Part shown: positions 4,201 through 61,185 of the stretch, in pieces
Layout: the number at the start of each line of letters is the position of its first letter
Position numbering within the stretch: position 1 is the first letter of the stretch
IMG/VR virus record: IMGVR_UViG_3300020202_000061
Location: 124,001-188,000 of that record
DNA length: 64,000 nt
Reading direction: 5' to 3' (one strand)
The notes under the pieces: generated by a model
What the model was told of the DNA's origin: nothing
The model's input: only the letters and a program-made list of their open reading frames with translations
Database searches by the model: none
Position numbers and translations under genes: made by a program

Positions 4201-4211
4201 AGTGCAACCCC

Positions 4212-4240
4212 TTGACATTCTCAAGGGTTTGCCTTAAATA
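4212..4240 (+). promoter_or_regulatory. Hybrid promoter TTGACA-N17-TAAATA for tmRNA
   Basis: Exact spacing; same design at 54045-54073 (tRNA cluster) and 5628-5656. Confidence 0.7.
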
Positions 4241-4246
4241 GGTCTT

Positions 4247-4515
4247 GTGACGTTGAAGCGTTGAAGAACGCTACTCTGGACCTGGGGGCGGTACCCAGCG
4301 GCTCCACCAAAATGCCCTCGGGCGCTATGGGGCCGAAACAGGATCGACAGGTAGTCAGTAGGCACGTGGAGTCATCCGGCGGAAGCTCGGTTAACGCAAC
4401 ACAAACAGTAATTGCCAACGATAACTTCGTTGCGGACGAGGGTTTCCGTATGGCCGCCTAAGGCGGTCCTCGGTAATCCAAATCCATCGCCCGGTGGGCG
4501 GGAAACAGAAACACC
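4247..4515 (+). ncRNA. ssrA: Circularly permuted two-piece tmRNA (alphaproteobacterial type); tag ANDNFVADEGFRMAA
   Basis: Acceptor piece first: T-arm CTGGG-GGCGGTA-CCCAG then CGGCTCC-A-CCA (ends 4309); 19-nt spacer; coding piece starts GGGGCCGAAACAGGATCGAC (4329). GGGGCCG/CGGCTCC gives the G3:U70 Ala determinant; tag 4414-4461; 3' GGAAACAGAA motif. Outer ends approximate. Confidence 0.93.
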
Positions 4516-4545
4516 AGAGAGCCGCCTTCGGGCGGCTCTCTTTTT
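4516..4545 (+). terminator. Intrinsic terminator of tmRNA
   Basis: AGAGAGCCGCC-TTCG-GGCGGCTCTCT followed by TTTT. Confidence 0.9.
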
Positions 4546-4561
4546 GTGTGGGATTACGGAA

Positions 4562-9336: not shown

Positions 9337-9426
9337 GGGCGTGTGGTGTAATGGCAGCACAGCGGTCTTATAAGCCGTTCGTTCCGGACTGGAGCATAGA
9401 GACGGGTTCGATTCCCTCCACGCCTA
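9337..9426 (+). tRNA. tRNA-Ile(UAU) with long variable arm
   Basis: Acceptor GGGCGTG/CACGCCT, A73; anticodon loop CTTATAA; V-arm GTTCCG-GAC-TGGAGC; T-loop TTCGATT with bulged T-stem; CCA not encoded (CCG). Confidence 0.8.
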
Positions 9427-9430
9427 CCGA

Positions 9431-45321: not shown

Positions 45322-45373
45322 CGCTTGCCTCAGAACCAAATCCCCACCATATTTGGGGTTGGAAAGAAGAATA

Positions 45374-46960
45374 ATGGGGAATGCAGGTACTTTTGTCGGA
45401 GCCAAACTCACAGAGGATTGCGCAGATCGCCTGATTGAGTGGATGACCCAGCAGGGTATCCCGAATCCGACTCCCAAAGAGGAGCTTCACTGTACGGTCG
45501 TCTACTCGGAAGAGCGTGAGATCAAGATCACACCGCTCGCCTATGAGCCGCCGCTGGAGATCGATCCGCGATTGTTCAAGTTCAAGCACTTCGGCGAGAA
45601 CCGCGAAGTTCTGGTCCTGGCATTCGACCGGCCTGAACTCGCTTACCGACATAAGCTGCTTCGCGAGAAGTATAAGCTGGGCTGGAAGTTTCCCAGCTAC
45701 ATCCCGCACGTCACTCTGAGTTACAACGCTCCGGAGCACATCGAGGTGTTGCCGGATTTTCCGCTGGTGTTCCAGGGAGAAGAGGTTGGTGGGTTCAATC
45801 CACCGGAGGAGTCTGCTGCGGCCGAGCATCTGGAGAAGAACGAACTCAGTGAGTATTACGAGATCGTCAACGATGAGCCCGTGCGCAAGAAGAAGCGCCC
45901 AGAACCGCCGAAGAAGTTGATCGCGCAGAATCTCATAAAGTTGGGCCTGAAAGAGGATCGTCATCATGAGGACCATCCTCGTGTGCAGGAGCCGGGTCCA
46001 CAACAACTCTCGTATACGAGTTCGATGCGACAGAACGCTGTGGGACAGAAGTGTCAGGTCATCGTGCAGATGCCGGTGCAGGACTTCCTCCGTCTGACCA
46101 CGACGAATGACGCGGATATCGAGACGGTCTTCCGCAAGCAGGCTCATCCGCTGGATTCCTACAATCACTGGAACCGCATGGGCGATGAGCGTGAATACGC
46201 GTCCCAGGTCAATCAGGGCAAGACCTCACAGGATAAAGATTATCAGTGGGGACGGATCGTCGGTCCGTTCTTGCGCATCGACATTGAGCCGCCAGCGGGC
46301 ACCTTCGGTAAGGTCTCCGGCCACGAAGGTCGTCATCGAGCAGCAGCCGTGTGGAACGCCGGAGGTAAAGTGATCCCGGTCGCGTTGTGTCTGCGTCCCT
46401 TCAAGGGAATGTTCCCGAAGAGCTATGGACCCGAATACGAGGCACATCGGGAGCACATCCCGATGGCCGTGCACGGCCAGTTTCGTTCGATCAGTGTGAG
46501 CACGAGGAATTGGAAGGTGATCGAACCAGACCTGCTCAAGCCGTATCGTCGCACGAACGAATCAGTGCTGATGGAGGTCGCAGGCTCGTTCTCGTGGTTT
46601 CATCCTAAGACCGAGCAAGAGGTCACTGCGGAATTCGGAAAGAACGAACACTGGGACCTCGTCAAGGCGAATCCGACGAGGTTTGGCATGACTCGTGCGG
46701 AAGTGAATCAGCCTAATGCGCGGATCGATGATGTCTTCAAACATGGCTGGGTTCGAGTCAACTATTACAGAGGTGTCTGGTACTTTCATGGACAAACCGC
46801 TGCATTGGTGCAGGCCGCAGCCAAGCACTACGCGTGGGCACATGAAGGACTACACGAGGTGATTCTGGATATCGTCGAACCCAACTACAAGTCCTACACC
46901 CTGATGGGTCCGGCCATCGAAAAGTTTCTCAAGCACGGAGTGCTGCCGGAGTGGCGCTAA
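45374..46960 (+). CDS. acb1: Acb1/T4 gp57B-like 2H phosphodiesterase fused to a ParB/Srx-like domain and the repeated unknown domain
   Basis: GTFVGAK...IPNPTPKEELHCTVVYS...LVL.FD..EL..RH...YIPHVTLSY aligns by eye with T4 57B; GHEGRHRAAA ParB-like motif. Confidence 0.8.
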   Translation: MGNAGTFVGAKLTEDCADRLIEWMTQQGIPNPTPKEELHCTVVYSEEREIKITPLAYEPPLEIDPRLFKFKHFGENREVLVLAFDRPELAYRHKLLREKYKLGWKFPSYIPHVTLSYNAPEHIEVLPDFPLVFQGEEVGGFNPPEESAAAEHLEKNELSEYYEIVNDEPVRKKKRPEPPKKLIAQNLIKLGLKEDRHHEDHPRVQEPGPQQLSYTSSMRQNAVGQKCQVIVQMPVQDFLRLTTTNDADIETVFRKQAHPLDSYNHWNRMGDEREYASQVNQGKTSQDKDYQWGRIVGPFLRIDIEPPAGTFGKVSGHEGRHRAAAVWNAGGKVIPVALCLRPFKGMFPKSYGPEYEAHREHIPMAVHGQFRSISVSTRNWKVIEPDLLKPYRRTNESVLMEVAGSFSWFHPKTEQEVTAEFGKNEHWDLVKANPTRFGMTRAEVNQPNARIDDVFKHGWVRVNYYRGVWYFHGQTAALVQAAAKHYAWAHEGLHEVILDIVEPNYKSYTLMGPAIEKFLKHGVLPEWR

Positions 46961-53319: not shown

Positions 53320-54048
53320 ATGTCCGACGAGAATCCCTTCGAGCACCTATCTGACTCGGAATTGATGGACCGTCTTGGTGTGTCCTGGAATTCCGTGCTG
53401 AACCTGCGTGCGCAGATCAAGAAGGCCAAGGAAGCTCTTCCGGCCGCGTCCGAGGAATTGGAACAGCTTGAACGGGAGGCGAGCAAGCGCAAACGCCGCG
53501 ATGAATGGCTGGCGAAGCAGCCCGAGTTCGAACGAGCCCGTCAGGACCCGGAGTGGCAGGCGTGGCGCGTGGCATTCCTAGCGCGGGCTCGGGCGGCCGA
53601 AATCAACACACTGAACCTTCCAACGCCGGGTTTGAATTTCGTCCATGAGGACGTGTCTCTGACAGACCTCAACCTGTTCATGGCTCCGATCCATCCCGAG
53701 GAAGAGTTCGTTCGGTTCGACAATTCCTGGACCATGGCCCAGGTTGTGGTGCACGTCGGTCTATTCCAGAGCCTGACTCAGGCCAGAAAGAACGGTTTCA
53801 ACAAGCCGATTCCCAGTGGTTTCTCCCAGCATGTGATGGGGAAGAAGAAAACCACGGTGTTCATTCTGAACCGCTTACCCAAAGAGCCTAAGCCCACGCG
53901 TAGCATGTCTTGGGTCTACCAGGGTGTCAGCTATACCTACGGAAATGGCTTTTACACCTGCACCTATCCCGATGGTATTTGGTCGGTCTCGTTCAATGGA
54001 GTGCATTTCGTAAATGGAAAAGTTGTGCGTTCGAAAAGAAACTCTTGA
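53320..54048 (+). CDS. Hypothetical protein with possible S4-like RNA-binding motif
   Basis: Coiled-coil N-terminus; MAQVVVHVGLFQSLTQARKNG resembles the S4 motif. Confidence 0.55.
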   Translation: MSDENPFEHLSDSELMDRLGVSWNSVLNLRAQIKKAKEALPAASEELEQLEREASKRKRRDEWLAKQPEFERARQDPEWQAWRVAFLARARAAEINTLNLPTPGLNFVHEDVSLTDLNLFMAPIHPEEEFVRFDNSWTMAQVVVHVGLFQSLTQARKNGFNKPIPSGFSQHVMGKKKTTVFILNRLPKEPKPTRSMSWVYQGVSYTYGNGFYTCTYPDGIWSVSFNGVHFVNGKVVRSKRNS

Positions 54049-54094
54049 CACACCCTGGGGTTTCGACTAAATACGTCCTGATCGCGAGATCAAC

Positions 54095-54207
54095 CCGATC
54101 ATAAGTTAACAAGCCGAGGGTTCGCTGTCCCATGACGATGGGAATGCACCTTAGCTAGACGACCAGCTTTTAACTGGTTAGTATGGGTCCGAGTCCCATT
54201 GGTCGGT
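54095..54207 (+). tRNA. tRNA-Lys(UUU)-like RNA with a ~40-nt hairpin inserted in the D-loop
   Basis: Acceptor CCGATCA/TGGTCGG; ACCAG-CTTTTAA-CTGGT; T-arm ATGGG-TCCGAGT-CCCAT; no CCA. Confidence 0.6.
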
Positions 54208-54210
54208 TAC

Positions 54211-54286
54211 GCCCCTGTAGCTCAGTGAATAGAGCGGCCGGTTTCTACCCGGTAGGTCGGGAGTTTGAATCTCTCCAGGGGTGCCA
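54211..54286 (+). tRNA. tRNA-Arg(UCU)
   Basis: GCCCCTG/CAGGGGT acceptor, loop TTTCTAC, encoded CCA. Confidence 0.9.
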
Positions 54287-54287
54287 A

Positions 54288-54364
54288 CCAGCGGTAGCTC
54301 AGAGACAGTAGAGCGCCGGAGTTAAATCTGGAGGTCGGGGGTTCAATTCCTTCCCGCTGGGCCA
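54288..54364 (+). tRNA. Atypical tRNA with 6-nt anticodon loop (GTTAAA); possibly Asn-derived
   Basis: CCAGCGG/CCGCTGG, G73, CCA; stem CCGGA/TCTGG closes only 6 nt. Confidence 0.65.
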
Positions 54365-54385
54365 TTTTGTAGAGGAAACACGACT

Positions 54386-54424
54386 ATGTTGTTGCGTGAA
54401 GAGGAATCGATGAAGGCTGTGTAA
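54386..54424 (+). CDS. Leader peptide MLLREEESMKAV (GAA-GAG-GAA) of the tRNA-Glu operon
   Basis: AGAGGA RBS 9 nt upstream; 3' end overlaps the antiterminator strand. Confidence 0.7.
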   Translation: MLLREEESMKAV

Positions 54425-54482
54425 TGTGACCAACATTGTTGGTGCACACGCAGCCGCCTGGAGAAATCCCGGCGGCTTTTTT
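54415..54482 (+). promoter_or_regulatory. Transcription attenuator: antiterminator 54415-54455 versus terminator 54452-54482
   Basis: GGCTGTGT pairs with ACGCAGCC around the GTG-ACCAAC/GTTGGT-G-CAC hairpin; terminator AGCCGCC-TGGA-GAAA-TCCC-GGCGGCT-TTTTT shares AGCC. Confidence 0.75.
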
Positions 54483-54490
54483 GTTGCTCT

Positions 54491-54567
54491 GTCCCTGTCG
54501 TCTAGCGGTCAAGGATGCCACCCTCTCAAGGTGGAGATCACGGGTTCGAATCCCGTCAGGGACGCCA
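54491..54567 (+). tRNA. tRNA-Glu(CUC)
   Basis: GTCCCTG/CAGGGAC, CCACC-CTCTCAA-GGTGG, TTCGAAT, CCA. Confidence 0.95.
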
Positions 54568-54581
54568 AGAATACGAACGAT

Positions 54582-54657
54582 GGCTCGTTCATCTAGTGGC
54601 CTAGGATACCGGACTTTCACTCCGGGTACACGGGTTCGACTCCCGTACGAGCTACCA
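54582..54657 (+). tRNA. tRNA-Glu(UUC)
   Basis: GGCTCGT/ACGAGCT, CCGGA-CTTTCAC-TCCGG, TTCGACT, CCA. Confidence 0.92.
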
Positions 54658-54659
54658 GA

Positions 54660-54734
54660 CGCCCATTCGTCTACTGCCTAGGACACTGGCCTTTCAAGCC
54701 AGGGGAAGGGGATGGATACCCCTATGGGCGACCA
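54660..54734 (+). tRNA. tRNA-Glu(UUC) with non-canonical T-loop
   Basis: CGCCCAT/ATGGGCG, CTGGC-CTTTCAA-GCCAG, T-loop ATGGATA, CCA. Confidence 0.85.
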
Positions 54735-54760
54735 GTTTCAGTTCCCGAACGGTAGTAGGG

Positions 54761-54837
54761 TGCTGGGGTGAAGCGGGGTTCGAGTCCCCAAGCGGATCGG
54801 TTCGACTCCGACTCGCGCAGGTGCAATATCCCCAGCG
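54761..54837 (+). ncRNA. tRNA-like element with two T-loop hairpins
   Basis: GCTGGGG/CCCCAGC closing stem; GGGG-TTCGAGT-CCCC and TCGG-TTCGACT-CCGA. Confidence 0.5.
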
Positions 54838-54841
54838 TTTT

Positions 54842-54922
54842 CCCCCGTGGGATTGCGGTTGGTGTGATCGCCGGTTTCTCAAATCGGAGCACAGATGGGT
54901 TCGACGCCCATACGGGGGACCA
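54842..54922 (+). tRNA. tRNA-Glu(CUC), divergent
   Basis: CCCCCGT/ACGGGGG, D-stem GATT/GATC, CCGGT-TTCTCAA-ATCGG, ATGGG-TTCGACG-CCCAT, CCA. Confidence 0.8.
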
Positions 54923-54965
54923 AAACTCCTAGACAAGATCGGGAAATCCTGGTATTACCGATCTC

Positions 54966-55319
54966 ATGCCGGTTCTCAAACATAAAATTCCCTGCAACCA
55001 GTGTCCGTTCCGACGCAAATCCGCGCCGGGCTATTTGGGTGCGGACACGCCGGAGCATTTCATTCAAACCACCCTGGCCGAGGCTCACATGCCCTGTCAT
55101 TGCGCCATCGACTACGAGCGCAAGGATTGGAAAACCCGACAGTATCCCAAGGCTGCTTTGTGCGCCGGGGCACTGACGTTCTTGAAAAACACCTGCAAAC
55201 TCCCACGTGATGAAGTGCTGCGTGAGGCCATGAAGGAAATTCCGGCAAATCATGCCGAGGTATTCTCGTTCGCTCCGCAGTTTCTGGAACACCACAACTC
55301 CCTGAAAGGACGCCGCTGA
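54966..55319 (+). CDS. Cys-rich hypothetical protein
   Basis: PCNQCPFR...CH...CAG. Confidence 0.65.
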   Translation: MPVLKHKIPCNQCPFRRKSAPGYLGADTPEHFIQTTLAEAHMPCHCAIDYERKDWKTRQYPKAALCAGALTFLKNTCKLPRDEVLREAMKEIPANHAEVFSFAPQFLEHHNSLKGRR

Positions 55320-56608: not shown

Positions 56609-57820
56609 ATGGCGAAGTTTGAAGTGCCCGTGGTTCGCGTTCGTGCGGTCGAGAAGCATCCGAACGCTGATCGACTCGATATCGTCCGTATCGGCGACTA
56701 CAACTGCATCAGCAACAAGAAAGAGGACGGCACGTCCAGGTATGCGCCGGGCGATCTCGTCGTCTACGTCCCGGAGGGTGCCATCGTTCCAGAGTGGTTG
56801 CTCCGCATGGGCTTCTGGAATGAAAAGACCAACATGGGTCTGCTCGCCGGACCTCAGGGCAATCGCGTGAAGGCGGTGACCCTGCGTGGGGTCATCAGCC
56901 AGGGCATTATGTTTCCGGTCAGCACTGGTGACGTGCAGGGCTTTCCCCTGGGTGATCCCAACATGAACGCGCCCTGGATCAGCGTTGAAGAGGGTCAGAA
57001 CCTCGCGACCGATCTCAACATCATCAAGTATGAGCCGGAGATTCCCGATTGCCTCAAAGGTTCGGTTGCGTCCTGCCACGGATGGACTCTCAAGGGCGAT
57101 CTGGAGAACGTCAAGAAGTTCCCCGACATCCTCCAAGAGGGTGAGGAAGTCGTGATGACCGAGAAGGTTCACGGCGTCTACATGCAGATCGGTTATGTAC
57201 CGAATTTGGAGTTCGAGATCGATGCCGACGAGAGCAATGGGCTCTACAAGGATGGCGATTGGTTCGTCACGTCCAAGGGTCTGGCCGAGGTCGGCATGGT
57301 ATTTCAGTTGAACGAGGAGAACGCTGAGAACCTCTACGTGAAGATGTTTCGCAAGATGAAGGAACGTCTGGAGTGGCTCTACAACGACATGTACGAGAAG
57401 TGGCAACAGACTCAGGATCGTTACTACCCGGAGAATCGCCCGTTCTACCTGATCGGTGAACTTTACGGGCCGGGCGTCCAGGACCTCCACTACAGTTTCC
57501 AGCAGGAGTTCGTCGCCCACGACATCTACATGGGTCAGCCCGGCAACGGTTGGTATCTGGATGAGGATCAGTTCGCCTATCATACCGAAAGGGCTCACAT
57601 CGACCGTGCGCCGGTCCTCTATAAGGGTCCGTTCTCGAAGGGGGTGATGCTCCAGCACACGAGTGGGCCAAGCGTCTTGGCTCTCGGAAAGCACATTCGT
57701 GAGGGACTGGTGGTGAAGCCCATGCAGAACCGCCGAGACGACCGGATCGGTCGCGTCATGCTGAAATCGGTCAGCGACGAATACTTGCTCCGTAAGGGAG
57801 ACGCTACGGAGTACGCATGA
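56609..57820 (+). CDS. RNA ligase, DRB0094/Rnl2-like family with N-terminal OB domain
   Basis: HPNADRL, YVPEG, LRG.ISQG, motif I EKVHG, GELYGPGVQ, REGLVVK, LKSVSDEYL. Confidence 0.9.
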   Translation: MAKFEVPVVRVRAVEKHPNADRLDIVRIGDYNCISNKKEDGTSRYAPGDLVVYVPEGAIVPEWLLRMGFWNEKTNMGLLAGPQGNRVKAVTLRGVISQGIMFPVSTGDVQGFPLGDPNMNAPWISVEEGQNLATDLNIIKYEPEIPDCLKGSVASCHGWTLKGDLENVKKFPDILQEGEEVVMTEKVHGVYMQIGYVPNLEFEIDADESNGLYKDGDWFVTSKGLAEVGMVFQLNEENAENLYVKMFRKMKERLEWLYNDMYEKWQQTQDRYYPENRPFYLIGELYGPGVQDLHYSFQQEFVAHDIYMGQPGNGWYLDEDQFAYHTERAHIDRAPVLYKGPFSKGVMLQHTSGPSVLALGKHIREGLVVKPMQNRRDDRIGRVMLKSVSDEYLLRKGDATEYA

Positions 57821-58332
57821 CGAACTGGGGCAAGATTTACCACCGGAAGGCTCGATTCACTAGGGATGAGGTTTATGGACGGTTTGGCTGTCCTCCGGCG
57901 AATCGTTCGAAGATCGTCGTCGATCTGCATGGTGAATGCACGTCAGTAAATCAACTTCGCCTGCGGGTGTTCTGGAACACCGGGTTTAGGTGTGTGGCGT
58001 GTTCAGCCGAACTGACCCATTTCTTCCAGGAGGCCCATGCCAACGACCCCAAGGTGAAATATCTGTTGGAGTTTCCTCCTGCCGGGGGTGGAAGTGGGAT
58101 TAAGTTTCATCTGAACGCTTATGGTCTGAACGAGTATGGTCATGAGGTCATGATGACCATCGACCATATTAAACCCCGGTGTCATGGCGGTAATAATCGC
58201 CTACACAACCTCACCACTCTTTGTTCGACCTGCAATGGAAAGAAGGGCGCAGACTTGAATTGGCTCAAAGACCTCCCACGTAATTCCCAGGGGTTTTTGG
58301 TGCCTCGCCCACATTTGCAGAATATTGAGTGA
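57817..58332 (+). CDS. HNH-motif protein
   Basis: CVAC; MTIDHIKP...GG.N...N...LC..CN..KG. Confidence 0.8.
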   Translation: MTNWGKIYHRKARFTRDEVYGRFGCPPANRSKIVVDLHGECTSVNQLRLRVFWNTGFRCVACSAELTHFFQEAHANDPKVKYLLEFPPAGGGSGIKFHLNAYGLNEYGHEVMMTIDHIKPRCHGGNNRLHNLTTLCSTCNGKKGADLNWLKDLPRNSQGFLVPRPHLQNIE

Positions 58333-59231
58333 TGTTCGATTCCATTGAAAAACCACCCGTGTGCGGAATCGCGTGCGGGGAAGCTGTCAATCTGCTCCGA
58401 GAGTATCCAGATGATTCGCTGGGTCTCGCCGTGACCAGTCCACCCTACAACATCAAGATGCCTTACGCGGATGGCGTCAGTGATAACCGCAGGGATTATG
58501 ACGAGTGGACTCTGGAATGGATCAGGGAAACCCTGCGCGTCTGCAAGGATGGGTTGATGATGAATCTCGCCCCATCGCCGAGCACGTCAACAAAGTTCTT
58601 CCGTGTGATGGGGCTGATCGCCCAACACTTTCATATCCAGAATTCTTGGGTTTGGGTGAAGTCGATCACCATTAATGAGACGACTTATGGGCATTTCAAG
58701 CCGGTGAATAGTGAATCTCATACGCATGTCTCGCACGAGCATGTCGTGTTGATTCAGAAGGACAAGAAGCACGAGGTCAAACTCGCTCGCAAGGCCATCG
58801 GCGTGCCCTACATGGATAAGTCCAACATCAAGCGTTTCAACCACGATTCCGATTTGCGTTGCCGTGGATCGACATGGTTTCTCCCCTACAAGACCCGACA
58901 GAAAAGCCTCGATCATCCTGCAACATATCCAGAGGATTTTGCTCGCATGATGATCCAGGTCGTGGACACCACGGGGATTGTGCTCGATCCCTTCGTCGGG
59001 TCAGGCACGACCATGGTTGCGGCTCACCAACTTGGGCTGCGCTCTATCGGATTCGACAAATCCCTAACCTATTGTGAAATGACTCGCGATAGGCTTGAGA
59101 AACTCCCGAATCCACCTAGATTGGCACTGCAAGGATTCGAGGATTCTCATGGAATTGATTGTCAAACCAACCCTCTACAAAAAGACTGCAACGGGGGCGA
59201 CTCAGATTTGGTATCAGGAGATCGAGGGTAA
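58332..59231 (+). CDS. DNA methyltransferase, N4C/N6A beta class
   Basis: TSPPYN, HPA.YP, VLDPFVGSGTT. Confidence 0.9.
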   Translation: MFDSIEKPPVCGIACGEAVNLLREYPDDSLGLAVTSPPYNIKMPYADGVSDNRRDYDEWTLEWIRETLRVCKDGLMMNLAPSPSTSTKFFRVMGLIAQHFHIQNSWVWVKSITINETTYGHFKPVNSESHTHVSHEHVVLIQKDKKHEVKLARKAIGVPYMDKSNIKRFNHDSDLRCRGSTWFLPYKTRQKSLDHPATYPEDFARMMIQVVDTTGIVLDPFVGSGTTMVAAHQLGLRSIGFDKSLTYCEMTRDRLEKLPNPPRLALQGFEDSHGIDCQTNPLQKDCNGGDSDLVSGDRG

Positions 59232-60291
59232 CAAATACCGCACCGTCTCCGGCCAACTCGATGGGCAGAAAGTCACCGCTGAATGGACCGTATGTGAGGG
59301 TAAGAACCTCGGTCGCGCCAACGCGACTACTCCAGAGCAGCAGGCCGGTCTGGAAGTGGAATCCAACTACAAGAAGAAGCTCGCCCAGGGCGGTTACTCG
59401 AACAGTGTCAACGAGATCGACACTCCGAACTACTTCAAGCCGATGCTGGCCAAGGACTATGATGACTATCCGGTCACGGAGGAAATGTGCCAGAAGGGAT
59501 TGGTCTATTCCCAGGCCAAGTATGACGGGGTTCGCTGCATCGCCACGGTCGATGGGTTGTGGTCGCGACAGGGCAAACCGATTCTATCGGTTCCCCACAT
59601 CAGCGAAGCACTGACTGAGTTCTTCCAGCACTTCCCGGACATGATCCTGGATGGTGAACTCTACGCGGATAAGTTCGCGAACGACTTCAATAAGATCATC
59701 AGCCTCGTGCGCAAGGCCAAACCCGGTTACGAGGATTTCAAAGCCAGTCGTGAGCACATCAAATATTTCAACTATGATCTGCCCGGTCACGGTGACATGA
59801 CGTTTGGCGAGCGCATCGCCCTGCGTGATGTCTACTACGAGAGTTTCCTCGGTCGCCAATCAGTTCTGCATCCGGTCGAGACCCACAAGGTCGAGAGCAT
59901 GCAGCATCTGGACAACCTCAATGATCTCTACCTCCAGGCCGGAATGGAAGGCCAGATGGTTCGCATTGATGGTTATCCCTACGAGAACAAGCGCGTCAAG
60001 CATCTGCTCAAGCGCAAGGTTTTCATGGAAAAGGAATTCCCCATTGACGATGTTGTTGAGGGTATCGGTAATCGAGCGGGTATGGCCGGGAACCTCACAT
60101 ATCGTCTGGAAGATGGTAGAACGTTTGACTCCGGAATTCGTGGAGGGGTTGACTTCTACAAGGAACTCCTCAAGAATAAGGCCAAATACATTGGCGGTCA
60201 GGGCACTGTCAGGTATTTCAATCTTACGCCGGACGGAATCCCAAGATTTCCCGTCACGGTCGCTGTGTTTGAGGGAGAGAGGGACACCTAA
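59149..60291 (+). CDS. ATP-dependent DNA ligase
   Basis: KPMLA, KYDGVR, LDGELY, EG.M.R, LLK.K, PRFP; GAGG RBS. Confidence 0.92.
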   Translation: MELIVKPTLYKKTATGATQIWYQEIEGNKYRTVSGQLDGQKVTAEWTVCEGKNLGRANATTPEQQAGLEVESNYKKKLAQGGYSNSVNEIDTPNYFKPMLAKDYDDYPVTEEMCQKGLVYSQAKYDGVRCIATVDGLWSRQGKPILSVPHISEALTEFFQHFPDMILDGELYADKFANDFNKIISLVRKAKPGYEDFKASREHIKYFNYDLPGHGDMTFGERIALRDVYYESFLGRQSVLHPVETHKVESMQHLDNLNDLYLQAGMEGQMVRIDGYPYENKRVKHLLKRKVFMEKEFPIDDVVEGIGNRAGMAGNLTYRLEDGRTFDSGIRGGVDFYKELLKNKAKYIGGQGTVRYFNLTPDGIPRFPVTVAVFEGERDT

Positions 60292-60705: not shown

Positions 60706-61185
60706 ATGACTTCGAGACAACTGACGGCTATCTGGGTTGCTGCGATAGCCTTGATCGTAGGGTTTGCATATTCGGCCCACTCTCAGGATCGCGTCGGCGA
60801 GGTCAGCACCACGTGGCGGATCGTTGGTCCCAACGACAAGGTGGTGATCGACCGCTACGACGATCCCAAGGTCGAGAACGCCTCCTGCTACGTCAGTCAC
60901 GCCGAGACGGGTGGTATCGGGGGCGCGATGGGTCTGGCCGAGGACCCCAGCCGATTCTCCATCGCCTGCCGCGCCACCGGCCCGGTCAAGATCACCGGGG
61001 ATATCGACCGAACCGCCGAGGGCGAGGTCATCTTCTCCGAGGATACGTCGGTCCTGTTCAAGGAAATGCGTGTGAGCCGCTTCTACGACGCCAGCAAGAA
61101 CGTGTTGGTCTATCTGGTCTGGTCCACCGAACTGATCGACGGTTCGCCCTTCAACAGCGTGACCGCGATCCCACTCACCGAATGA
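60706..61185 (+). CDS. creA: CreA-family periplasmic protein
   Basis: Signal peptide; DDPKV....CYVS.A.TGG..G..GLAED.S..SIACR..GP; S..FK...V.R.YD. Confidence 0.88.
   Translation: MTSRQLTAIWVAAIALIVGFAYSAHSQDRVGEVSTTWRIVGPNDKVVIDRYDDPKVENASCYVSHAETGGIGGAMGLAEDPSRFSIACRATGPVKITGDIDRTAEGEVIFSEDTSVLFKEMRVSRFYDASKNVLVYLVWSTELIDGSPFNSVTAIPLTE

Follow-up and report, generated by a model that had tools for sequence, protein, structure and literature searches.

Genomic context of the tRNA-Glu genes

Four tRNA genes with glutamate anticodons lie on the plus strand between positions 54491 and 54922 of the window, i.e., the whole 64,000-nucleotide stretch analysed here (positions 124,001 to 188,000 of IMG/VR record IMGVR_UViG_3300020202_000061). 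They form the distal part of a series of stable-RNA genes and are preceded by a short reading frame and an intrinsic terminator. The following features were identified, all on the plus strand:

54045..54073 (+), promoter-like site of the stable-RNA operon: TTGACA, 17 nt, TAAATA
54095..54206 (+), tRNA-like element: a 7-bp acceptor-like stem, a long arm in place of the D-arm, an anticodon-like arm and a T-arm, without CCA
54211..54286 (+), tRNA-Arg(UCU)
54288..54364 (+), non-canonical tRNA with a 6-nt anticodon loop (GUUAAA)
54372..54376 (+), Shine-Dalgarno-like GAGGA upstream of the mini-ORF
54386..54424 (+), leader mini-ORF of 12 codons plus a stop, MLLREEESMKAV, with the Glu codons GAA GAG GAA at 54398-54406
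54415..54455 (+), proposed antiterminator: the 5' arm at 54415-54422 (the last codons of the mini-ORF) pairs with 54448-54455 and encloses hairpin B (54426-54447)
54453..54482 (+), intrinsic terminator: a GC-rich hairpin at 54453-54476 and a U6 tract at 54477-54482, ending 8 nt before Glu-1
54491..54567 (+), Glu-1, tRNA-Glu(CUC)
54582..54657 (+), Glu-2, tRNA-Glu(UUC)
54660..54734 (+), Glu-3, tRNA-Glu(UUC)
54735..54841 (+), conserved spacer RNA: an acceptor-like stem (54762-54768 with 54830-54836) encloses two T-arm-like hairpins, without CCA
54842..54922 (+), Glu-4, divergent tRNA-Glu(CUC)
56609..57820 (+), RNA ligase with an N-terminal OB domain, 1.7 kb downstream

The region was compared with three related metagenomic phages, designated L014, L020 and L022. 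An exact pattern search found the promoter-like motif only twice in 64 kb, here and at 4212 in front of the tmRNA gene, whereas 0.02 matches are expected by chance. The site is invariant in the four phages. A generic promoter scan did not list it, because that scan requires a T at the last position of the -10 hexamer. The tRNA-like element has a fold with z = -2.5 and a partial Rfam tRNA match of 21 bits at 54148-54203. It is conserved in L014 and L022 and replaced by a different element in L020. The tRNA-Arg(UCU) was called by ARAGORN and scores 62 bits in Rfam; the four phages carry three unrelated versions at this position. The non-canonical tRNA (ARAGORN 'tRNA-???', Rfam 45 bits) is 98.7% identical in the relatives, the only change being the middle loop base, U to C.

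The spacer RNA between Glu-3 and Glu-4 is 97-98% identical in L020 and L022, against 72-87% for the flanking genes. Its fold is not unusually stable (z = -0.5), and it has no Rfam match. The RNA ligase was assigned by Pfam (RNA_ligase, 8.9e-18; PHA02142 OB domain, 2.3e-11) and phrog_968 (3.2e-47), without a sequence match among solved structures. Its orthologues are 35-39% identical in Caulobacter and Brevundimonas jumbo phages; hence, it is a feature of the lineage and not tied to the Glu set.

Four divergent tRNA-Glu genes

ARAGORN calls all four tRNA-Glu genes, each ending in an encoded CCA. Their anticodon loops are CUCUCAA, CUUUCAC, CUUUCAA and UUCUCAA, each on a different stem. The initial annotation had described four strongly diverged tRNA-Glu genes that are not recent duplicates, and this observation is confirmed in every detail, including the loops, the T-loop AUGGAUA of Glu-3 and the enlarged D-loop and 7-nt variable region of Glu-4. 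Pairwise identity among the four is only 57-70%, no higher than their identity to the neighbouring tRNA-Arg (59-62%).

Glu-1 is of the canonical bacterial type, with G1-C72, U2-A71 and discriminator G73, and is about 82% identical to tRNA-Glu(CUC) of bacterial MAGs. Glu-2 has G1.U72, A73 and a 4-nt variable region. Glu-3 has C1-G72, A73 and an 8-nt D-loop, ACUGCCUA; its odd T- and D-loops are invariant in three phages. Glu-4 has C1-G72, A73, G8 G9, an 11-nt D-loop and the 7-nt variable region. Against the Rfam tRNA model (RF00005, gathering score 29 bits), Glu-1, Glu-2 and Glu-3 score 63.9, 58.0 and 45.7 bits, respectively. Glu-4 is below the threshold and was found by ARAGORN only; its best clan match is tRNA-Sec at 15.8 bits (E = 7).

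All four show 7/4/5/5-bp stems, a 7-nt anticodon loop with U33 and a purine at 37, and a discriminator plus CCA. The conserved elbow and core nucleotides (U8, G18 G19, U54 U55 C56) are present in Glu-1 and Glu-2 but not in the other two. Glu-3 has A54 and G56 and a D-loop with G-C where GG is expected, which could be a swapped 19:56 pair, although this is an inference; Glu-4 has G8 and G9. The GluRS identity set of E. coli comprises the anticodon, A37, G1-C72, U2-A71, U11-A24, U13.G22 and the absence of residue 47. The anticodon YUC with A37 is found in all four, but only Glu-1 has both G1-C72 and U2-A71. At 1:72 and 2:71, Glu-2 has G.U and G-C, Glu-3 has C-G and G-C, and Glu-4 has C-G and C-G. 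The S. meliloti tRNA-Glu also has G1.U72, so the E. coli rule is not universal. U11-A24 and U13.G22 are present in Glu-1 to Glu-3, while Glu-4 has A11-U24. Only Glu-2 and Glu-3 have a 4-nt variable region, that of Glu-1 being 5 nt. The anticodon loops themselves are not exotic: that of Glu-2 is the same as in the Sinorhizobium and Azospirillum tRNA-Glu. The main differences lie in the acceptor stem, elbow and variable region.

L020 and L022 keep all four genes, whereas L014 has only Glu-1 plus a different UUC tRNA; the full set of four is, hence, dispensable. Of 17 variable positions across three or four phages, eight form four double compensatory pairs, one in each tRNA: C-G to U-A in the anticodon stem of Glu-1 (L022 and L014), A-U to U-A in the anticodon stem of Glu-2 (L020), A-U to G-C in the acceptor stem of Glu-3 (L020) and U-A to C-G in the T-stem of Glu-4 (L020 and L022). 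The other nine lie in loops, the variable region or CCA. No pair is broken, and all 21 pairs are standard in every copy from three or four phages. The RNA blocks are 92-100% identical between phages whose flanking genes are 72-87% identical. On this comparative evidence, all four are functional RNAs kept by purifying selection.

Glu codons make up 5.0% of the codons in the window (GAA 411, GAG 504; GAA 45%). This use is ordinary; codon supply, therefore, does not explain the set.

A putative Glu-codon attenuator

The leader has the elements of a ribosome-mediated transcription attenuator, as far as can be judged in silico. GAGGA, invariant in the four phages, lies 10 nt before the AUG of the mini-ORF. 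The predicted peptide is identical in the four phages, and the only changes inside the ORF are synonymous, at codon 3 (TTG, CTG, CTA). It is the only one of 701 ATG mini-ORFs in the window that contains EEE. The terminator is likewise invariant. It was not listed by a simple terminator scan requiring an unbroken stem, because its stem has internal bulges. No repeated promoter-like motif was found in the leader, and the tRNA-Glu genes have no promoter of their own.

The proposed antiterminator appears in the minimum-free-energy folds at -21.5 kcal/mol. The full terminator hairpin is -16.6 kcal/mol and falls to -7.5 when its three basal pairs are taken by the antiterminator. In masked folding, these basal pairs have P of about 0.05 with the A site on Glu codon 1 or 2, and of about 0.97 one codon past the run or at the stop. 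This holds in all four phages, except that L020 reaches only 0.44-0.50 at the stop position, though 0.98 one codon past the run. An antiterminator of this kind arises in about 1% of shuffles, and such a switch in 0.5-0.8%.

The support remains computational and rests on four closely related sequences. Covariation in the leader is thin: one U.G pair becomes U-A in L014, and hairpin B is kept despite a substitution plus an indel. The antiterminator competes for only three terminator pairs. Moreover, an internal in-frame AUG at 54410 lies 5 nt after a better-spaced GAGGA that sits inside the Glu codons. The EEE run could, therefore, be a by-product of a ribosome-binding site for a 4-codon ORF, and the switch would then sense translation in general. 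The purine tract also pairs with the U-tract in the full-length fold. A search for cognate-codon leaders upstream of other tRNAs in the loci compared found none.

Possible role of the tRNA-Glu set

The favoured, though tentative, reading is an on-demand, self-limiting supply of varied tRNA-Glu, used when host tRNA-Glu is depleted or cut. In this view, the region is one stable-RNA operon of a jumbo phage related to the Caulobacter and Brevundimonas Dolichocephalovirinae, driven by the sigma-70-like promoter at 54045, and the Glu genes can be transcribed only by read-through of the terminator. When Glu-tRNA is plentiful, a ribosome would translate the leader to its stop and cover the 5' arm of the antiterminator, so that the full terminator forms. 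When Glu decoding is slow, the ribosome would stall on GAA-GAG-GAA, the antiterminator would persist, three basal terminator pairs would stay open, and RNA polymerase would run into the tRNA-Glu genes. The new tRNAs would restore decoding and shut the switch again. The varied acceptor stems, elbows, variable regions and loop positions 32 and 38 would make it unlikely that one tRNA-directed nuclease disables the whole set. The genes, their divergence, their conservation with compensatory changes, the operon layout, the conserved leader ORF and the alternative structures in silico are established by the analysis, whereas translation of the leader, Glu-specific stalling, regulation in vivo, charging with Glu and the counter-defence purpose are inferred.

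The interpretation given in the initial annotation is partly supported. It had proposed a diversified set that evades anticodon nucleases of differing specificity, assuming that RloC-type enzymes can cut tRNA-Glu, or that serves different GluRS paralogues of alphaproteobacterial hosts. A diversified, old set kept by selection is confirmed, while evasion of nucleases remains a hypothesis with circumstantial support only. The context fits a backup or counter-defence role better than codon supply. Phage tRNAs rescue infection from tRNA-cutting defences (PMC10264068, PMC11464382, PMC11555353), and bacterial nucleases that cut tRNA-Glu exist: an EndoU CdiA-CT toxin (PMC9424206) and Cas13a collateral cleavage (PMC11042736).

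Ordinary tRNA supplementation is less likely but is the strongest alternative. The four genes would simply raise tRNA-Glu dosage for a phage with lower G+C than its host, with constitutive expression by partial read-through of a leaky terminator. The mini-ORF would then be incidental, and the conserved leader only a structured terminator or small RNA. Cultured relatives carry 23-28 tRNAs, interpreted as codon supply (PMC3556154), and about 280 kb of this 347-401 kb genome, contig Ga0196964_10000008, lies outside the part examined, so the excess of Glu tRNAs may be local. The same operon and window carry tRNA-Arg(UCU) and tRNA-Ile(UAU), which read codons that are rare in GC-rich hosts. The internal AUG with its GAGGA offers a different reason for the purine run, and the pairing of the purine tract with the U-tract also fits this view. 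On the contrary, Glu codon use is unremarkable, and GAG, probably the host-favoured codon, gets two dedicated CUC tRNAs. Dosage needs copies, not four bodies that are 57-70% identical and each maintained by compensatory change. The coincidence of the only EEE mini-ORF in the window with the tRNA-Glu genes, and of the Glu run with the exact switch boundary, would be left unexplained.

It is rather unlikely that Glu-3, Glu-4 and the non-canonical neighbours are not mainly decoders but decoys or inhibitors of tRNA-binding host proteins (nucleases, modification enzymes or sensors), or substrates of a tRNA-dependent enzyme. Glu-3 lacks U54 and C56, and its D-loop has a single G followed by C; Glu-4 lacks U8 and fails the Rfam threshold. 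The tRNA with a 6-nt anticodon loop, the tRNA-like element without CCA and the spacer with two T-arm-like hairpins are all conserved. However, Glu-3 and Glu-4 keep 7-nt anticodon loops with U33 and A37, exact Glu anticodons and an encoded CCA. L014 replaces Glu-3 with a tRNA that has the same acceptor top, A73 and loop but a normal elbow. This suggests that the acceptor and anticodon are what is selected, as expected for a charged decoder. No tRNA-dependent enzyme was seen among the ORFs scanned.

That the different acceptor stems match different host GluRS paralogues is very unlikely, although the data speak neither for nor against it. The 1:72 pair and discriminator do differ (G-C with G73, G.U with A73, and C-G with A73 twice), and many alphaproteobacteria have two gltX genes. 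No GluRS gene is present among the ORFs scanned, and both C1-G72 tRNAs lack the G1-C72 and U2-A71 elements that matter for E. coli GluRS. Least likely is that some of the four, above all Glu-4 with its low Rfam score, G8, oversized D-loop and 7-nt variable region, are decaying pseudogenes or ARAGORN false positives, since Glu-4 is 95-96% identical in two phages whose flanking genes are 72-87% identical and carries a double change in the T-stem with no broken pair.

Why phages carry tRNA genes has been debated for fifty years, with codon supply set against defence evasion. This locus offers an unusually clean test, combining one amino acid, four divergent isodecoders that selection keeps and a compact candidate switch of about 100 nt that would tie their expression to how well that amino acid's codons are being read. 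If the switch works as modelled, it shows that a phage monitors the decoding capacity of the host and repairs it on demand; it would extend leader-peptide attenuation to tRNA genes and give a portable sensor for tRNA-Glu availability. Such a self-regulating tRNA replacement circuit, aimed at host tRNA-Glu depletion or cleavage, would be the first attenuator whose regulated genes are the cognate tRNAs themselves, and would turn the question of what phage tRNAs are for into a reporter assay; on present evidence, this full reading is not excluded but doubtful. If the switch does not work, the locus is still a well-documented case of several non-redundant isodecoders kept in a minimal phage tRNA operon, one of them (Glu-3) with a possibly swapped elbow pair.

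Searches for relatives and associated functions

A metagenome scan with a 31-mer from the leader found only the window's own contig, as did IMG/VR scans for the Glu-1 3' half and for a degenerate leader pattern. The exact Glu-3 T-arm hit seven other viral contigs; none of them holds a tRNA, so these are chance matches. Homologues of the 117-aa protein downstream of the cluster, at or below 61% identity, lie in unrelated contexts without tRNAs, and the 203-aa protein gave no new syntenic locus. No GenBank phage has a counterpart of the cluster.

No tRNA end-healing enzyme (Pnkp) was found among the ORFs scanned against Pfam and PHROGs, which were not every ORF in the window. Only an Acb1-like 2H domain and a calcineurin-like phosphoesterase were detected, and no repair pathway is claimed. 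A Ro/Y-RNA system was considered because of the 'RNA-binding protein' next to tRNA-like RNAs in CcrColossus, but the two large unassigned ORFs of the window are not homologous to that protein.

Comparison with known systems

T-box riboswitches follow a similar logic, sensing the state of a specific tRNA to control genes of the same aminoacylation pathway through a terminator/antiterminator choice. However, no T-box match was found in Rfam, even at E up to 10 in 53900-55300. The element is too short, at about 100 nt, and contains a translatable ORF instead of a specifier loop and T-box bulge.

Ribosome-mediated attenuators (trpL, hisL, pheL; the pheM leader of pheST; trpL of Sinorhizobium, PMC6614838; theory in PMC1183508) share with the candidate a short leader ORF with a run of regulatory codons, an antiterminator and a terminator that exclude each other, a stop codon next to the 5' arm of the antiterminator and a distance of about 75-80 nt from the regulatory codons to the U-tract. 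Here, the genes that would be controlled are the cognate tRNAs themselves, not biosynthetic or synthetase genes, and the element is in a phage. There are only three regulatory codons, the antiterminator overlaps the terminator by only three pairs, and without translation the default is read-through. No published example of this arrangement was found in a literature search of limited extent.

Phage tRNA clusters used against tRNA-targeting defences (T5 tRNA-Tyr and others versus PARIS and retron Eco7; mycobacteriophage tRNAs with altered anticodon loops: PMC11464382, PMC11555353, PMC10264068) also duplicate host decoding capacity, differ in sequence from bacterial counterparts and are not explained by codon use. 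In the present phage, four isodecoders for one amino acid sit together, their differences lie mainly outside the anticodon loop, and their transcription appears to be conditional.

The Dolichocephalovirinae (phiCbK, CcrColossus; PMC3556154) and Mesorhizobium phage Cp1R7A-A1 are likewise large phages of alphaproteobacteria with many tRNAs. By blastn, no counterpart of the four tRNAs was found in the cultured Caulobacter or Brevundimonas phages, which were described as carrying one large general set. Cp1R7A-A1 has adjacent UUC and CUC tRNA-Glu genes, whose T-loops also begin with A54.

Genomic context and the tRNA-Glu cluster

The window is part of the 347.5-kb viral contig IMGVR_UViG_3300020202_000061 (also Ga0196964_10000008) and encodes an RNA ligase that is 35-39% identical to those of the Caulobacter phages CcrColossus and CcrPW and of the 350-kb Brevundimonas phages, all belonging to the Dolichocephalovirinae. 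It also carries a permuted (two-piece) alphaproteobacterial tmRNA (4208-4552, +), with the tag ANDNFVADEGFRMAA and an Rfam score of 108-114 bits. Hence, this is a jumbo phage of an alphaproteobacterium, although no close relative was identified in GenBank.

ARAGORN calls four tRNAs with Glu anticodons in a + strand cluster that also holds a tRNA-Arg(UCU) and a non-canonical tRNA:

Features of the four tRNA-Glu genes (Rfam tRNA threshold, 29 bits)
54491-54567 (+): Glu-1, anticodon CUC, anticodon loop CUCUCAA, 1:72 pair G-C, discriminator G73, D-loop 9 nt, variable region 5 nt, T-loop UUCGAAU, Rfam 63.9 bits
54582-54657 (+): Glu-2, anticodon UUC, anticodon loop CUUUCAC, 1:72 pair G.U, discriminator A73, D-loop 9 nt, variable region 4 nt, T-loop UUCGACU, Rfam 58.0 bits
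54660-54734 (+): Glu-3, anticodon UUC, anticodon loop CUUUCAA, 1:72 pair C-G, discriminator A73, D-loop 8 nt (ACUGCCUA), variable region 4 nt, T-loop AUGGAUA, Rfam 45.7 bits
54842-54922 (+): Glu-4, anticodon CUC, anticodon loop UUCUCAA, 1:72 pair C-G, discriminator A73, D-loop 11 nt, variable region 7 nt, T-loop UUCGACG, Rfam below threshold

The initial annotation, which had placed four diverged tRNA-Glu genes at 54491-54922, exactly the span of these calls, is confirmed, and the observation is far more than chance: the four anticodon loops, the odd T-loop of Glu-3 and the enlarged D-loop and 7-nt variable region of Glu-4 are all as it described. Glu-4 has, in addition, G8 and G9, and its best Rfam match is tRNA-Sec, at only 15.8 bits (E = 7). 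The four sequences are 57-70% identical to each other, which is no closer than they are to the adjacent tRNA-Arg. All six tRNAs of the cluster encode CCA.

Conservation in related phages

Three syntenic relatives were recovered through the flanking proteins. Two of them, L020 (an SRA assembly) and L022 (an ENA assembly), keep all four tRNA-Glu genes and the spacers between them. The third, L014 (a 409-kb JGI contig), keeps Glu-1 but then carries a different UUC tRNA and unrelated sequence, showing that the set of four is not obligatory. Across these copies, 17 positions vary within the four tRNAs. Eight of them form four double compensatory changes, one per tRNA:

Compensatory changes in the tRNA stems
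Glu-1, anticodon stem: C-G to U-A, in L022 and L014
Glu-2, anticodon stem: A-U to U-A, in L020
Glu-3, acceptor stem: A-U to G-C, in L020
Glu-4, T-stem: U-A to C-G, in L020 and L022

The other nine variable positions are located in loops, the variable region or CCA, and no pair is broken. The Glu-2 gene of L022 (5918-5993) ends in CCG instead of CCA because of a one-base deletion at the junction with Glu-3, and would need 3' end repair by the CCA-adding enzyme. The RNA blocks are 92-100% identical, while the flanking genes are 72-87% identical at the nucleotide level. Since four double substitutions had time to fix, the near-invariance of everything else reflects constraint and not only recent transfer. 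All four, including the low-scoring Glu-4, are therefore functional structured RNAs.

Types of tRNA-Glu and codon usage

Glu-1 is a standard bacterial CUC type, with G1-C72, U2-A71, G73, U11-A24 and U13.G22, and is about 82% identical to tRNA-Glu(CUC) genes of bacterial MAGs. In L030 (Hyphomicrobiaceae MAG contig JBPCWB010000049.1, 3407-5541), a tRNA-Glu(CUC) with G1.U72 and A73 is one of fifteen tRNA genes within 2.1 kb, an array of the kind often carried by phages or mobile elements, so it is not safe to take it as a host reference. Glu-2 combines the loop CUUUCAC with a 4-nt variable region, and its G1.U72 pair is also found in the tRNA-Glu of Sinorhizobium meliloti, while the Azospirillum tRNA-Glu has G1-C72. 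Glu-3 and Glu-4 have C1-G72 and A73, which is not known from bacterial tRNA-Glu. Glu-3 has A54 and G56 in the T-loop, and its D-loop reads G-C where GG is expected; the simplest reading, inferred from sequence alone, is a swapped 19:56 elbow pair. The UUC tRNA that replaces Glu-2 to Glu-4 in L014 shares with Glu-3 the first five acceptor pairs, A73 and the loop CUUUCAA, but its elbow is normal. This suggests that the acceptor top plus the anticodon is the selected combination.

In 63 non-overlapping ORFs of the window, Glu accounts for 5.0% of codons (GAA 411, GAG 504). Nothing in this usage calls for four Glu tRNAs, two of which read only GAG. Cultured relatives carry 23-28 tRNAs (PMC3556154), and the genes considered here are those of the window alone, about 280 kb of this genome lying outside it.

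Organization of the operon and its leader

A TTGACA-N17-TAAATA motif occurs twice in the 64 kb, at 4212 (4212-4240) before the tmRNA and at 54045 before the tRNA cluster, against 0.02 matches expected by chance, and is invariant in four phages. The first element of the operon (54095-54206) is a tRNA-like RNA with a long arm in place of the D-arm and without CCA. Its anticodon-like loop is CUUUUAA in the window and CUUUGAA in L014 and L022, whereas L020 carries a different tRNA-like RNA here (about 2683-2755), with the loop AGUUAAA. Together with Glu(UUC) and Arg(UCU), this makes the operon rich in anticodons that start with a modified U34, the class most often hit by anticodon nucleases.

The next slot, tRNA-Arg(UCU) in the window (54211-54286), holds three unrelated sequences in four phages (L020 2756-2831; L022 5546-5621 and L014 9165-9240). 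The non-canonical tRNA follows (54288-54364; L014 9242-9318; L020 2833-2909; L022 5623-5699). It is well formed, with C1-G72 and a 6-nt anticodon loop, and is 98.7% conserved; the single difference is the middle loop base, GUUAAA in the window and GUCAAA in the three relatives. The anticodon would read UUA or UCA, which resemble stop-codon readers. As L014 also swaps everything after Glu-1, the operon evolves by cassette replacement around an invariant core of non-canonical tRNA, leader and Glu-1.

Between the non-canonical tRNA and Glu-1 lie 126 nt that are 95-96% conserved and contain, in order:

Elements of the leader
54372-54376 (+): GAGGA, ribosome-binding-site-like
54386-54424 (+): 12-codon ORF, MLLREEESMKAV, with the Glu codons at 54398-54406
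54426-54447 (+): hairpin B, inside the putative antiterminator
54453-54476 (+): GC-rich terminator hairpin
54477-54482 (+): U6 tract, ending 8 nt before Glu-1

There is no room for a promoter between the terminator and Glu-1, and no recurring motif was found in the leader; the Glu genes therefore depend on read-through. The peptide is identical in all four phages, the only changes inside the ORF being TTG, CTG and CTA at codon 3, all encoding Leu. Of 701 ATG mini-ORFs of 8-30 codons in all six frames of the window, this is the only one containing EEE.

Predicted alternative structures

In the minimum-free-energy fold, the last codons of the ORF (54415-54422) pair with 54448-54455, enclosing hairpin B and taking the three basal pairs of the terminator. 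The predicted energies are -21.5 kcal/mol for this antiterminator, -16.6 for the full terminator and -7.5 for the truncated hairpin, which then stands 3 nt away from the U-tract. A ribosome footprint was masked and the RNA folded up to the end of the terminator stem, giving the following probabilities for the basal terminator pairs:

Probability of the basal terminator pairs by ribosome position
A site on Glu codon 1 or 2: about 0.05
A site on Glu codon 3: 0.05-0.98, depending on the footprint
One codon later (Ser), or at the stop: about 0.97

This holds in all four phages, except that L020 reaches only 0.44-0.50 at the stop position, though 0.98 at the Ser codon. The Glu run thus sits exactly at the last positions where, in these models, a stalled ribosome leaves the antiterminator intact. 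When the upstream sequence is shuffled, an antiterminator arises in about 1% of cases and the full position-dependent switch in 0.5-0.8%. However, the antiterminator competes for just three pairs, and structural covariation in the leader is thin, as only four close relatives exist: one U.G pair of the antiterminator becomes U-A in L014, and hairpin B survives an A-to-C change together with a G insertion. The purine run also pairs with the U-tract in the full-length fold.

A candidate Glu-codon attenuator

The layout is that of a leader-peptide attenuator whose regulated genes are the cognate tRNAs. In this view, fluent Glu decoding would give termination, while stalled Glu decoding would give read-through, more phage tRNA-Glu and then closure of the switch. 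The genes, their conservation with compensatory changes and the layout of the operon are established by the sequence comparison, and the alternative structures in silico only, whereas translation of the leader, stalling on the Glu codons, regulated read-through, charging with Glu and any role in counter-defence are inferred. A second reading of the EEE run is possible, since an in-frame internal AUG (54410) lies 5 nt after a GAGGA that is part of the Glu codons. The run might therefore be a ribosome-binding site for a 4-codon ORF, and the switch might sense translation in general. A ribosome stalled on the Glu codons would also cover that site, so the two readings are compatible and are not distinguished by the present data. 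No report of an attenuator in front of tRNA genes was found in the limited literature searched, and it is this candidate element that makes the locus worth an experiment.

Such a switch fits a backup or counter-defence role for a structurally varied set. Phage tRNAs rescue infection from tRNA-cutting defences (PMC10264068, PMC11464382, PMC11555353), and tRNA-Glu is a target of an EndoU CdiA-CT toxin (PMC9424206) and of Cas13a collateral cleavage (PMC11042736). The interpretation offered in the initial annotation is partly supported: evasion of anticodon nucleases is plausible and fits the context, but remains a hypothesis in the absence of an identified host, while the proposal that the four serve different GluRS paralogs has no support. 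No end-healing enzyme was found among the ORFs scanned, and the nearby RNA ligase is a feature of the whole lineage.

Additional features of the locus

The 107-nt spacer between Glu-3 and Glu-4 (54735-54841) is 97-98% conserved. A 7-bp acceptor-like stem encloses two T-arm-like hairpins (GGGG-UUCGAGU-CCCC and UCGG-UUCGACU-CCGA), without CCA, Rfam match or unusually stable fold; it may be a stable small RNA or remnants of tRNA 3' halves. Directly after Glu-4, and 8 nt before the ATG of the next gene, lies a second promoter-like site (54930-54958, TAGACA-N17-TATTAC), and a similar site (TAGACA-N17-TATCTT) is present in L020 and L022. Further downstream, a block of RNA ligase (with OB domain), HNH endonuclease, N6/N4 DNA methyltransferase and ATP-dependent DNA ligase (56609-60291, +) is conserved in L014, L020 and L022, followed by a CreA homologue at 60706-61185. 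Upstream of the operon, a 535-aa protein (45353-46960, +), conserved in L014, has an N-terminal domain matching the anti-CBASS protein Acb1 (Pfam 2.6e-22; PDB 7t26, 7e-12), with no assignment for the remaining 390 or so residues.

Elsewhere, a tRNA-Ile(UAU) (9337-9428, +; Rfam 45.8 bits) has an insertion of about 20 nt in the variable region, giving 92 nt in total, and such a long extra arm is unusual for tRNA-Ile. Just beyond the window end (about window position 64100; locus L002, 15492-15568), a tRNA-Cys(GCA) has its own TTGACA-N17-TATATG promoter-like site, with no leader ORF or terminator in front of it. The cultured relative CcrColossus (109.2-109.8 kb, minus strand; locus L038, 24650-25345) also has several tRNA-like fragments, and annotated terminators around a 68-nt 'tRNA-Gln', next to a gene annotated as RNA-binding protein. 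Odd tRNA-like RNAs may be common in this phage subfamily.
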